Assembly (NCBI GenBank): GCA_009103225.1
Contig: RHPI01002069.1
Span: 1,698,846-1,762,845 of the forward strand
From: Chlorokybus atmophyticus
Lineage: Eukaryota > Plantae > Mesostigma and Chlorokybus algae
DNA: 64,000 bases
Direction: 5' to 3'
The translations under genes were made by a program, and so were the position numbers. A model generated the notes under the pieces. That model worked only from the letters and a program-made list of their open reading frames with translations. It searched no databases and was not told the DNA's origin. This document shows, piece after piece, positions 20,001 to 29,051 of the stretch (position 1 is its first letter; the number at the start of each line of letters is the position of its first letter).

Positions 20001-23000
20001 CAGACAGTCGAGCAAAGACATACTCTCTTCTTCTGGCGGACACCATCATTATTCGTGAAGGCGAGAAGCCCGAGGTTGGTTGGCTTTCAGTTGACTTAAT
20101 GTACTGTGCGTATGATAGTCAAGTGCTGCGATCACGCTGGATGCTGATTGTGCTGTGATTTCAGGTTGCAACGGCCATGGCTCCAAAAGGCATCACAGAT
20201 GTTGCCTACTCTTTCCAGGTGCGTGTGCTTTCAGCCACGTTGCTTTGTTGGTCCAGCACTGTCCTGTCATAATGACTCAAAGCATCTTGTGTGGTGCTCT
20301 CCAGGATGGTGGTGATGACGGATCGAAGGAGAGCAATGACGAGGGCGCTGAAGAAGATCAGGAGATCGTGGCGCAGGCCAAGACCCGCGGGCAGCAGAAT
20401 GGCGAGTCTGTGGTTCTCAACACGTCATTGCGCTCAGAAAACCAGCAGAAGAGCGCTGAAGGTGACTAGGCTCAGTTGTCTGCTCCAGCGTGGTGCCAAC
20501 TCGTGTGTGTCACGTGCCATTTGTGTGTCTTGATAAACTCTTGCAGCCCTTCGAAGAGAGAGACAGGCCGAATTGGCGCGGCAAAAGAACGAGGAGAGCA
20601 TGCGCAGGTGTGTAAGCTCTCATGATTGTGCGTGATTCATGTACTTCAAGCATGCACAATTATTGTTGCATCGAGGGGACATGCAAAGCAGGTAATTGGC
20701 GTGCAGGTTTGCCGCTGGTGAGGTTGGCGCAGATCAACCTGGTGGATCCAACAAAAAGGACTCCGCAGACGTGGTAGCGTACAGGCACGTGGACGAGATA
20801 CCTACCGTTGGTCGGGAGCTGACAATACAGGTACAGCGCTTCAACTGGCAGTCACGATTGTTGTTCAATACTGCGGAGTCCAGTCTTTACCCACGTTTTT
20901 TGCTGCTGCAGGTGGACCAGAGGCATGAGGCGGTGCTTCTGCCGATCTACGGTGTTCTCTTGCCGTTCCATGTCTCAACAATAAAAAGCGTCACGAGTCA
21001 GCAGGTACCTCACAGTCACACTCTCCTTGAAGCTTTCGCGCTTTGTTGCAATGTATGTTTGTTGCTGTAACACCGGTGTATTTGCAGGATGGCGGACACT
21101 CCTTTCTGCGAATCAACTTCAATATCCCCGGCACAGGGTTTGCTGCTGGATACCCACCTGCCATCAAATACCCAAACTCCATCTTCTTGAAGGAGCTTTC
21201 GTATCGGTCTAGTGACGTTCGACATGTGAATCAGGTGCTCTTAATAGCGTGCGTGGCAACGTGCTGTGTTCCCTTTAGTTCATATCACTGAGCTCCAAGG
21301 AACTTATCATCGTTGATTTGTGTCCAGATTGTATCAGTTTTGAAGACATTGCAGCGTCAAGTGCGGCAGCGTGATACCGAGCAAGCAGAGCGCGCGACTC
21401 TTGTGACTCAGCAACGCCTGATCACAAGCAAGGGTAGGCATTTGCAAGTCAGCGTATATGTTGTGTGCACAGCCCACATTACTCCTTACGCTGTCCATAT
21501 CATTGATGGCAGGGAGGGTATATCGACTGGAGGATCTTTGGATTCGTCCGGCATTTGGCGGCAGGGGTCGCAAGCTGCCCGGCGTGCTGGAATGTCACAC
21601 CAACGGGTTCAGGTACAGCACGCGCAAGGACGAGGAGCAAGTGGACATCATGTTTGAAAACATCAAGCACGCCTTCTTCCAGGTACGCATGGCTTGGTGC
21701 GGAGTAATGTTGCTTTGTCGTACACATGGTTGTTTGCACGATCGGTGCTCGTTTTTCCAACTGTGCTCGTCCTTGCAGCCTGCAGAGAATGAGATGATTA
21801 CGCTGCTGCACTTTCATCTGAAGCATCCTATCATGGTTGGCAAGAAGAAGACCAAGGATGTGCAGTTTTACGCGGAGGTTATGGACGTTGTACAGAACGT
21901 GGACGGCATGCGTCGTTCGGCCTATGACCCGGATGAGATTGAGGAGGAGCAGAAGGAAAGGGAGCGCCGCAACCGCGTCAACATGCAGTTCCAGAAATTT
22001 GTTAAGCTGGTACATATCGCCATCTATCAACAGCAGCAGATACTGCCCACACCATATACAAACTTCTTTCTTGTCGGGCAGTCCGTGCTCATGTATGACT
22101 TGCACGTAGGTGAATGAGGTCTGGGAGCGAGAATACAAGCAGTTGGATCTTGAGTTTGATGTCCCATTCCGAGATCTTGGCTTCAACGGCGTACCATATA
22201 AGTCAAGTGCATTTTGTATCCCTACTGTCAACTGCCTGGTAAGCAGTTGCTGGGCCAAACTCTGTATGCGGGCTTTGGTGTTGTAATGTGTTGTTGCATG
22301 TCGATGCACTGACAGCTATTCGTCTACACCTGCAGGTGGAACTCATCGAGCAGCCCTTCTTGGTTATAACTCTCAATGAGATAGAGGTGGTAAACCTCGA
22401 GCGTGTGGGCTTCGGCCTCAAGAACTTTGACATGGCCATCGTGTTCAAAGATTGGGCCAAGGAGCCTCATCGGATAGACGCCATCGAGAGCAAGTCCCTG
22501 GACACCATCAAAGAGTGGCTGACCTCCATGAACATCAAGTACTACGAGGGACGCATCAACCTGAACTGGAAGCTCATTATGAAAACTATCCTGGACGACC
22601 CGCAGAAGTTCTTCGCGGATGGGGGATGGGAGTTCTTGAACAACGAGGCCAGCGATGATGAGGTGTGTGATACGTGTCTGAGTATGTGTATGCGCATGTG
22701 CATGTGTATTTGCCAATCCTAGCATATACGATCTGTTGACATGGGTTTATTTGACTTGATGATAGGAGGCGCATTCAACAGAGGAGTCTGATGGTTACGC
22801 CCCGTCTGGTTCTGAAGTGGAGAGCGATGATGCGGTTTGTGCAAGCCTGAGCATTTGTATTTGTATTTGTTGTTTGTAGTATGCCATCTGTCAGTTTATG
22901 GTGATGCAAGTCAGCAAGGGAAGTGTTTCTTGGCCATATGCTTATGACTTCTCTCTTGTTGTGCAGTCTTCATCGGACAGCGAATCCCTGGTAGAGTCAG

Positions 23001-23334
23001 ATGATGACGAGTACGAAGGCTCTGAAGAAGAAGAGTCAGAAGAAGAAGATCAGGGCAAGAGTTGGGACGAGCTGGAGGCCGAAGCAAGAAGGTATTGTTT
23101 GTTTAAGCAATGAGCATTGCCTTTGACACCAGCGGTTGGCAGCAGAGTTGCATCACCTCAACATGCACCATGCCTATATAGCTGTTGTTGGTTTGCTCAA
23201 CATGTGGATGTGTGTGCAGAGCGGATAAGGAGAAGGGGTCTGATATTGATAGCGAAGAGGAGCGACGAGCGAAGCGGAAGCCGAAAGCCACGGACAGGAG
23301 ACCGCCTCCCCCGACAAAGAAGATGAGGCGTTGA
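17041..23334 (+). CDS. SPT16: FACT complex subunit SPT16, multi-exon
   Basis: Exons encode DSDLFASRLKRLYATWK, CSLGARYSSYCANIARTYLVDPT, GCGIGLEFRE, VDQRHEAVLLPIYG, FLRINFNIPG, LECHTNGFRYS, PAENEMITLLHFHLKHPIMVGKKKTKDVQFY, VVNLERVGFGLKNFDM, GGWEFLN and an acidic then basic C-terminus ending PPPTKKMRR*. Confidence 0.98.
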
Positions 23335-25720: not shown

Positions 25721-26935
25721 ATGGCTGGCGGCGTCATGATGGGCGGTAGCGGCGGCGGCGGCGGCGGAGGGGGAAGCCACGCCCTGCCCAGGGAGGTCAT
25801 CAGATGGCTCCTCAGCCTGGATCTAAGCTACCCATTCAAAAACGTCAGACGGTAAGACAATAATCAAAGCGTGTGTGTGTAAGCAGAGAAGTTGATAATA
25901 ATTGTGTGCGTAGACAGAAAATCATTATGTGTGTGTTTGAAATGAATTCTGCGTTTGATCTTTGTTCTCTCTTGTAGGGATTTTTCCAATGGGTTTCTAG
26001 TTGCGGAGATCTTCAGCCGTTATTTTCCCTCTGAGGTGTCTATGCACAGCTACGACGCCGCCGCCACCGCCACAGCGAGAAAGAGGGACAACTGGGGACT
26101 GCTGCAGAAACTATTCAAGGCAAGAGCATGGTTGTGTTTGAAACCCCTCTGTTACGCACGCAGACATCAGGATGGTGACGAATGTGGTTATCATACAGCC
26201 GTAATCATACAGCGGATGTGATGATGATGATGATGATGATGATGGTTATAATTGTTACCTTCATTATCATCATCATTGTCAAGATGATGCACGCATCCAT
26301 CCTCACCCCACACCCGCACTCTCGTCCAATCGCACACGCACATACACACATGCGCGCGCTCACGCACGTACATGCTGGCGTGCACGTGATTCTATATTGG
26401 AGGGTGCAAATTGACACAAGGTCACTGCACGATATGCATACAACAGAAGAAGGGGTTTTATGTGAGCGATGAGGAGTCTGCTGGCGTGATAGCGTGCGAA
26501 CCCGGCTTTGCCGTGCCGCTGCTGCACAGAATACACAGGTTTCTCACAAACCGCAAGTAAGCGCCGCTTTGTGTGCGTGCTTTTGAAAGCAACAACCCGA
26601 TACAAAGCCACCCCTTGCTTTGTCCTCTGTTGCAGTGTTGGCGATGTCGACGTGGGGCAGTTGATATCCATCGTGGAGGCCGAAACCCGCATTCATGACA
26701 ACGGATACCAATTCCATGAGCAACAACAGCGACAACAGCAACAACAGCAATTCCACTCTCAATTTGATTCTCAAGACGCGTATCACATGTATCAACCTCT
26801 CCAACAACAACAGCTCCAACAGCTCCAGCATCAAGATCAAGAGTCGCAGCTTCAGCTGCAGATTCAACTGCAGATGCAGATGCAATATCAGCAGCTCCAA
26901 CAACAACTCGCATCACTCCAACAGCAGAAACAACA

Positions 26936-26966
<31 letters not shown>

Positions 26967-29051
26967 CAACAACAACAACAACAAGTTGAAGAAAGTGAAG
27001 GGGAGATGATCTCATCTCGAGAGGTTTACAGCAATGGTGTTGAACAGCTTGATATTGTTGATGAGGACGACAGCGATATCGATGTTGATGAGGAGGACGA
27101 CATGCGCGAGTTTGCACAGCGGGTGAGCGCCATTGAAGACAACTCTCATCGTCAACAACAACAACAGCAGCGGCGGAGCGAAGAGGGGCCAGCGAGCACC
27201 AGCGGCAGAGAAAGAGTTTTGGTTAACAATGGCAGCAGAGATAACAGGAGCACGCGCAGCGGAGGCAACAACAATACCAACAACAGCAAACCGCAGAGCC
27301 GGAGAGGGCCACTCAACGCCGTACAACGCGCGAGGTGAGTGTTGGTGTTGCTGCTGTTGTTGTGTTTTTTGGTTTGTTGTTCATGTTGTTGTTGTTGTTG
27401 TGCACGCTAACTCGCTTCTCTCAGGGAGGCCGAGGCCCAGGCCCAGGCCCAGTCGTCCAAGTCGGGTCTCTCCCCTGGCCGCGGTCAGACCGCCACCGCC
27501 ACCGCCGCCGAGCGCAGCAGCACACGGAACGCAGACCACCATCAGCAGCAGGACACCGAACGGAGCGGGGGGGACCCGTCGCTGGCGTTCAGAAAAGGAC
27601 CGAGAATGGTAGGGGGATAGCAAGCCATGCTGTTGTTGAGGTGATGTGTGGATGGATGTGTGTGTGTGAGCGCACGCGTGGTAGATGTGAGGTCTCAGGC
27701 TTTCTTTGTTCAGACACACGCGTGCGCGCGTGTGTGTACGTGTGGCTGCACGTGTGTGTTGTATCAGCGTTTCTGTACGTGTGCGTGTGCGCGTGCGCGT
27801 GCGCGTGCGCGTGCGCGTGCGTGTGTGTGTGCTTATCACGATCTGTCCTGTCTGCATCCAGCCCGGTTTCGAGCCTTACACTCTGGAGGACTACCAGCGC
27901 ATGCGCGGTCCCGGCTACTACGAGCTGGGCAAGCTGGGTCCCGACCTGGACGTGGACGCGCTCGCGGAGAAGAAGGCAAAGATCGACAAGGCCAAGAGTT
28001 ACGCGCAGGAGGCGAGAGCCAACAACATAAGCACAACCAATGGGGTCAGTAAAGAGGCATTATGCGCATTGTGCACTGCTTGACTGAGGTGGAGATGTTG
28101 TACAAGTTGTTGTGTCCCGACTATGTGTGTCTCCTCTGTCCTGCAGGTTGATGGCAGCAGACAGGGGAAGCGGGTTGAAAAATCTGCAGACAAGCCGTCC
28201 ACACGCAAAAAGGTGCGCTTACCTGAATAACAGTTGCTTTGAGCAGACAGTGAGCTGCGTTGTTGGGGAGAGGNNNNNNNNNNNNNNNNNNNNNNNNNNN
28301 NNNNNNNNNNNNNNNNNNNNNNNNNNNNNNNNNNNNNNNNNNNNNNNNNNNNNNNNNNNNNNNNNNNNNNNNNNNNNNNNNNNNNNNNNNNNNNNNNNNN
28401 NNNNNNNNNNNNNNNNNNNNNNNNNNNNNNNNNNNNNNNNNNNNNNNNNNNNNNNNNNNNNNNNNNNNNNNNNNNNNNNNNNNNNNNNNNNNNNNNNNNN
28501 NNNNNNNNNNNNGGGCACACGAGAGGGTGCGCACGCACGCACGCACACACATACACGCCCATGTACGCGCGTGCATGTGTGGGCGCACGTATACACGTGC
28601 ATACATGTTTGCCTGCAGGCGTGCACATATGGTTGCATGTGGGTTAGCGTGCGTGCGCGTGCATATTGGTATTGGGTGTTACGTGTGCATGTCTGACACA
28701 CAATGTTGGGCAGGCGTTGGAGTTTGCCAATAACATTCCAAAGCCAAAGGTGCCCGTCAAGCAGTCCTTGTTGGAGCCCCAGCAGCAGGAGCAGTACAGG
28801 CAGCTGACTGAGCTGGAGGCCCTGGAGCTGCAGCACCAGCTGGACCAGGAGCGTGTTGAGGTGAGTGTGGGAGTGCGGATCACTGAATGACTGCTTGTTG
28901 ACCCAATCAGTACGTAAGCTTGTGGCTTCAAGTCAGCAAGAGCATACCATGACGAAACGTTGTTGATCATACGTAGACACATGACTGCTGATGAAGCTTG
29001 GTGTTTTTCTTGCAGGCAATCAGGAGAGGCTTGAAAGGGGTGCGCTGTTGA
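25721..29051 (+). CDS. SPATA4/SPEF1-type CH domain + polyQ/acidic linker + JHY-like C-terminal domain, about 9 exons
   Basis: The N-terminus reads LPREVIRWLLSLDLSYPFKNVRR|DFSNGFLVAEIFSRYFP...RDNWGLLQK. A Q-rich exon spans 26636-27334. The C-terminal exons read FEPYTLEDYQRM...ELGKLGPDL...KKAKIDKAKSYAQEARANN, STRKK|ALEFANNIPKPK and LEALELQHQLDQERVE|AIRRGL. Phases are consistent across junctions, and one intron contains an N gap. Confidence 0.8.

Follow-up and report, generated by a model that had tools for sequence, protein, structure and literature searches.

A probable CH_2-JHY fusion gene in Chlorokybus atmophyticus and its counterparts across the green lineage

A stretch of 64,000 nucleotides from the alga Chlorokybus atmophyticus (contig RHPI01002069.1 of assembly GCA_009103225.1), referred to here as the window, carries on its forward strand a nine-exon locus at positions 25721-29051. 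Comparison of its sequence with related proteins indicates that the locus is very probably one gene, encoding one protein of about 565 residues with an N-terminal CH_2 domain, a long linker and a C-terminal JHY domain. The fusion architecture is a variant of known central-pair proteins, present in databases but unnamed. The parts of the gene, the assembly gap within it and a related gene beside it are as follows.

25721..25851, + strand: exon 1; start codon, Gly-rich N-terminus and first CH_2 helix (..WLLSLDLSYPFKNVR), ending in phase 2; aligns to the N-termini of fused orthologues
25978..26119, + strand: exon 2; CH_2 core (DFSNGFLVAEIFSRYFP...), followed by a GC-AG intron; Pfam CH_2 match
26447..26556, + strand: exon 3; end of CH_2 (..LLHRIHRFLTNR), donor in phase 2; placed by alignment to orthologues
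26636..27334, + strand: exon 4; linker of 233 codons, Gln-rich, then acidic, then Asn/Ser-rich, with the conserved box NAVQRAR last
27425..27608, + strand: exon 5; linker, closing with the conserved LAFRKGPRM box ahead of the JHY region
27862..28044, + strand: exon 6; PYTLEDY box and first third of the JHY domain; Pfam JHY match
28147..28212, + strand: exon 7; 22 codons, middle of the JHY domain, ending ..STRKK
28274..28512, no strand: assembly gap of 239 N inside intron 7 (28213-28713), with CA/CG-rich simple sequence on either side
28714..28860, + strand: exon 8; ALEFANNIPKPK box and C-terminal helix of the JHY domain; Pfam JHY match
29016..29051, + strand: exon 9; last 11 codons AIRRGLKGVRC and TGA; aligns with the orthologue C-terminus EAIRRDLECFLR
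25301-25225, 24758-24620, 24128-23943, - strand: CH_2-only paralogue; three exons, 133 codons, head-to-head with the fusion gene

A script check of exon lengths, phases and splice sites gives a coding sequence of 1698 nt, corresponding to 565 codons and TGA, with consistent phases and no internal stop in any of the nine exons. The splice model proposed in a preliminary description of the window, which had been presented as phase-consistent, is borne out by this check. Of the eight introns, all are GT-AG apart from intron 2, a GC-AG intron. The sequence motifs listed in the same description are also where the model places them: PYTLEDY, LGKLGPDL and KSYAQEARANN all lie in exon 6, RKK followed by ALEFANNIPKPK spans exons 7 and 8, and LELQHQLDQERV lies in exon 8. 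The long Gln-rich and acidic linker that it reported corresponds to exon 4; it is of low complexity and presumably disordered. The frame that exon 3 fixes for exon 4 stays open; the last 110 codons of the exon form part of the Chlorokybus model Chrsp17S02606 of JGI, and its terminal box NAVQRAR aligns with SAVERARQK of the orthologues. Two local features of the gene are recorded here for completeness. Intron 2 (26120-26446) has the donor AAG/gcaaga, which the model requires, and the same intron in Sphagnum has a GT donor. Exon 1 contains a run of Gly codons (GGC/GGA, 25739-25774) that is absent from the orthologues and constitutes a species-specific low-complexity extension of the N-terminus.

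Domain searches were run exon by exon, and additionally on Chrsp17S02606 (P0001) and natural orthologues, with Pfam gathering cut-offs of 27 bits for both CH_2 (PF06294) and JHY (PF15261). Exon 2 alone matches CH_2 with 55 bits (E 8.3e-15) over positions 20-65 of the hidden Markov model (HMM), and exons 1 and 3 align to the remainder of the domain in orthologues; exon 3 by itself is too short to score in the Pfam and PDB searches. For JHY, single exons reach 27.0 bits (exon 6, HMM positions 1-37) and 24.1 bits (exon 8, positions 59-118), while P0001, which comprises the last 110 codons of exon 4 and exons 5-8, matches HMM positions 1-119 in one stretch with 55.1 bits (E 1.4e-14). Both terminal domains named in the preliminary description therefore clear their cut-offs in Pfam. 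The JHY region of Chlorokybus is 37% identical over 115 residues to Owenia CAH1796106, a protein used as a bona fide JHY orthologue by Chen et al. No solved JHY chain was found in the PDB with exon 6, exon 8 or a JHY profile of 77 sequences. An AlphaFold model of the JHY region, built from an alignment of 48 sequences, displays four locally confident helices and no compact fold (predicted local distance difference test 78, predicted template modelling score 0.31). Such a model would be expected if the JHY segment orders only on a partner or on the microtubule lattice, as it may.

The two-domain protein is not confined to Chlorokybus. A phmmer search with exon 6 against 1.84 billion representatives returned 80 matches, the JHY of Owenia among them, and 66 of the 77 scanned with Pfam carry JHY, two of them together with CH_2. 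One of these two (P0022) is a Pyramimonas transcript, MMETSP1081; the other (P0016, L001) differs little from a fern protein, being nearly identical to it, and comes from a 1644-bp Logan contig, where it forms an uninterrupted open reading frame (ORF). Three more proteins came from a word search with P0022: Adiantum capillus-veneris GOP47_0000812 (P0091), Sphagnum magellanicum CY35_U002800 (P0092) and a protein of Physcomitrium patens annotated 'CH-like domain-containing protein' (P0093); a word search with the JHY region of P0022 returned the query itself as the sole match. In the Tetraselmis chuii cluster, P0127 is an uninterrupted ORF of 490 residues on a Logan contig, scoring 95 bits for CH_2 and 64 bits for JHY. 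Direct Pfam scans detect both domains in all six proteins, three of which are uninterrupted ORFs on transcript-type sequences. The architecture search that the preliminary description had called for in other flagellates thus recovers the same two-domain protein in six other green-lineage sources. All cases fall within Viridiplantae: two chlorophyte classes, Chlorokybus, mosses and ferns. Domain architecture and intron positions are kept over the span that separates prasinophytes from ferns. The fused proteins share with Chlorokybus the domain order, the boxes LAFR.., PYT..DY, LGKLGPD and KALEFA..PKP, the C-terminal ..AIRR.. and intron positions, whereas the length and composition of the linker differ among them, that of Chlorokybus being rich in Gln and acidic residues. 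The tree of JHY domains offers little resolution: it unites Chlorokybus and Pyramimonas (96/84), and it neither recovers a single clade of fused proteins nor allows one to be rejected (p = 0.44 in the approximately unbiased test). The UniRef entry A0A7S1SGZ8 from Tetraselmis chuii (403 residues; P0023) is a 5'-truncated copy of P0127 that starts at a Met within the CH domain. Truncated models of this kind hide the fusion in databases, and some apparently standalone JHY matches may be similar artefacts. In the literature searched we found no paper describing a CH-JHY fusion, or JHY in plants or green algae, and none of the fused proteins is named or studied there, in agreement with the earlier remark that the architecture was not known as a described one.

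Colinear alignment with the fused proteins of the green lineage extends over exons 1-3, the NAVQRAR end of exon 4 and exons 5-9 and places the Chlorokybus protein in their orthogroup. The strongest evidence for a single gene is the exact mapping of its exons onto the Sphagnum gene. Introns 1, 2, 3, 5, 7 and 8 agree in position and phase and intron 6 agrees approximately, so that seven of the eight Chlorokybus introns have Sphagnum counterparts in position and six also in exact phase. Intron 3, which separates the CH domain from the linker, interrupts the same codon in both species, the third one past the 'LT' that closes the CH domain, and does so behind its second base.

Outside the green lineage JHY is found in a different setting. 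Proteins of 200-400 residues that carry JHY without a CH domain occur in the oomycetes Plasmopara (where the protein is annotated 'DUF4591'), Saprolegnia and Lagenidium, in the ochrophytes Mallomonas and Chrysophaeum, in the cryptists Goniomonas, Palpitomonas and Baffinella, in Naegleria fowleri and in two eukaryotes labelled TZLM. Several of them pass the Pfam JHY cut-off when scanned directly. They share with Chlorokybus the JHY region and the upstream boxes LAFS.K.R and PYT..DY. The fusion is accordingly not the common architecture of protists, an outcome that the preliminary description had kept in view: protist JHY proteins stand alone, and the fusion is the usual form in the green lineage. 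About 28 standalone JHY proteins have in common a seemingly undescribed N-terminal box, SF(L)xRFxxKISxV(T/G)xxG, which is not detectable in the fused proteins. A segment of exon 4, MREFAQRVSAIED (27102-27140), was considered as a remnant of this box and rejected, its scores against the box profile not rising above the background of the window.

Several observations weigh against a single gene for a central-pair protein. The JGI model P0001 (312 residues; 27006-28890) begins within exon 4, taking the internal Met at 27006 as its start, and does not include the CH exons; roughly the first 120 codons of exon 4 consist of Gln repeats that stay open in more than one frame and are devoid of homology support; retention of intron 3 leads immediately to a TAA (26557-26559); a functional-looking CH_2-only paralogue of 133 codons lies head-to-head with the gene; and the central-pair localisation of the protein is inferred from its homologues only. 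Most of these observations would also be accommodated by a secondary fission into two adjacent genes, a CH_2-only gene of exons 1-3 ending at the TAA directly past the exon 3 donor and a JHY-only gene starting at the internal Met of exon 4, the more so as standalone JHY proteins of 200-400 residues are the rule in other protists. We nevertheless regard fission as distinctly improbable. The exon 3 donor matches the Sphagnum CH-to-linker intron in position and phase and is followed 79 nt downstream by a good in-frame acceptor, and all seven other green-lineage sequences examined, including the 5'-truncated Tetraselmis entry, derive from fused genes. Two separate genes would moreover need to house a 3' untranslated region, a promoter and a 5' untranslated region within just ~450 bp, most of it CAG/CAA repeat. 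Nor does P0001 carry much weight for its own start. Exon 6 matches it at 100% in the EukProt/JGI libraries. At its 3' end the model runs on beyond the exon 8 donor, adding ..VEVSVGVRITE from intron 8, and leaves out exon 9; since this conflicts with the alignment of exon 9 to the conserved C-terminus of the orthologues, the model is unreliable at its ends, and its wrong 3' end makes it weak evidence for its 5' end. No transcript-derived Chlorokybus protein is among the matches in the protein libraries searched, and a word search with the exon 2 ORF yielded no Chlorokybus CH-only model of 48-154 residues, other lengths being outside its scope. The locus could alternatively produce both forms, a fused mRNA together with a CH-only isoform by retention of intron 3 and a JHY-only isoform by internal initiation. 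The stop immediately inside intron 3 and the in-frame Met codons at 27006 and 27102 in exon 4 fit such isoforms, one of which the JGI model may represent; a JHY-only product of this sort would lack the N-terminal box of standalone JHY proteins, which the profile test does not detect in exon 4, and we consider the isoforms unlikely. A single fused gene remains the reading that we prefer, and it corrects the public annotation of Chlorokybus, where the JGI model is cut short at its 5' end and has an incorrect 3' end.

The assembly gap at 28274-28512 raises the separate concern that the fusion is an artefact, the gap hiding a misjoin that brought exons 8-9 from elsewhere. The gap does sit within the gene, and the continuity of the scaffold across the Ns is not provable from sequence. 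Exons 7 and 8 meet in phase 0, the 21 JHY HMM positions (38-58) left open between exons 6 and 8 are taken up by the 22 residues of exon 7, and the Sphagnum magellanicum orthologue has a phase 0 intron at the identical position, between KK and ALEF. Together with the uninterrupted match of P0001, the common phase, the filled HMM and the conserved intron indicate that no coding sequence appears to be hidden in the gap. An artefact of assembly is extremely improbable: exons 7 and 8 complete the JHY HMM with no missing positions, intron 7 is conserved in Sphagnum, and the junction in question, that of CH with JHY, lies upstream of the gap.

The CH domain had been described beforehand as of SPATA4/SPEF1 type, and the match scores uphold the SPATA4 half of this label and not the SPEF1 half. 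Among PDB chains, exon 2 scores best with Chlamydomonas FAP178/FAP225 (47.5 bits), ahead of SPEF1 (32.6 bits) and SPATA4 (31.0 bits). The full CH domain of Pyramimonas P0022 reaches 83.2 bits with FAP178 and 79.5 bits with SPATA4, compared with at most 51.9 bits with SPEF1. By these scores, the Chlorokybus domain is closer to the SPATA4/FAP178 type than to SPEF1. SPATA4 and FAP178 share this CH_2 subtype with the fusion protein, whereas their chains (295 and 222 residues, respectively) have no JHY domain. SPEF1 (CLAMP), a central-pair protein and known JHY binder, belongs to the same CH_2 fold family, yet its chains align to P0022 only over the CH domain: the C-terminal dimerisation region of SPEF1 is unlike the C-terminus of the fusion protein, which is JHY, and no SPEF1-type dimerisation domain is found after the CH domain there.

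The functional context of these domains is known from animals and Chlamydomonas. A partnership of WDR47, SPEF1 and JHY has been demonstrated experimentally (PMC12979858, December 2025); according to the same study, mammalian JHY is located at C2 or close to it and lends stability to the distal central pair, and it does not itself bind microtubules but is recruited by SPEF1 via its JHY-containing C-terminus. [quoted passage not shown] Animal JHY (C11orf63; mouse Jhy, juvenile hydrocephalus) resembles the Chlorokybus protein in its C-terminal JHY domain, both passing PF15261, and differs in its long N-terminal region, which lacks the CH domain that the Chlorokybus protein has built in. By analogy, the fusion protein would be held on the central pair by its CH_2 domain, with the C2 seam as the most likely site, and its JHY helices would be positioned in cis, where mammals use a separate SPEF1 to recruit JHY in trans. 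Its place of action would then be the flagella of zoospores or sperm. A complex prediction that paired the CH domain of P0022 with its JHY region yielded no answer (score 0.00) and counts neither way. The functional partnership of JHY with a CH_2 protein that had been predicted from the fusion agrees with the published JHY-SPEF1 interaction and is hence not new: the covalent link of CH_2 and JHY corroborates that interaction instead of anticipating it, providing independent genomic support. The subtype of the CH partner goes further, as a domain of the SPATA4/FAP178 type, which belongs to the C2 seam, predicts a relationship of JHY with SPATA4 at C2, and with it a testable site and contact protein for JHY in the central pair.

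The distribution of JHY bears on its published history. PMC12979858 reports no JHY homologue in protozoa, assigns the origin of JHY to cnidarians and bilaterians and rests an evolutionary argument on this. Pfam-significant JHY in green algae, bryophytes, ferns, oomycetes, cryptists and Naegleria contradicts the claim that JHY is absent from protists. In the literature searched, no paper mentions DUF4591 and the term 'JHY domain' occurs in PMC12979858 alone. Relative to this literature, two findings are new: JHY outside animals, contradicting PMC12979858, and a fusion partner of the SPATA4/FAP178 subtype. We tentatively suggest, while holding this to be far from assured, that the JHY module of the central pair is ancient, going back probably to the last eukaryotic common ancestor, and that green plants fused it to its CH_2 partner and other eukaryotes, including animals, kept it as a separate, interacting protein. 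If this is true, the published origin of JHY in cnidarians and bilaterians, for fixing the ciliary waveform, needs revision, and a contact between JHY and SPATA4 is predicted in animal cilia.

The surroundings of the fusion gene are partly related to it. The start codon of the CH_2-only paralogue is located 419 bp from that of the fusion gene, and the intervening sequence is probably a bidirectional promoter region common to both. The first two introns of the paralogue occupy the positions found in the fusion gene, its exon lengths of 77 and 139 nt equal those of Sphagnum exons 1-2, and the two genes are 60% identical in exon 2. The paralogue probably arose by inverted, partial duplication of exons 1-3. 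Among PDB chains it matches FAP178 best, and it may be the functional counterpart of the CH-only FAP178 of Chlamydomonas. Further upstream, at 21458-23113 on the + strand, lies a gene for SPT16 of the FACT complex, recognisable by PH_SPT16 (178 bits), an Rtt106-like middle domain (73 bits) and an acidic C-terminal tail.

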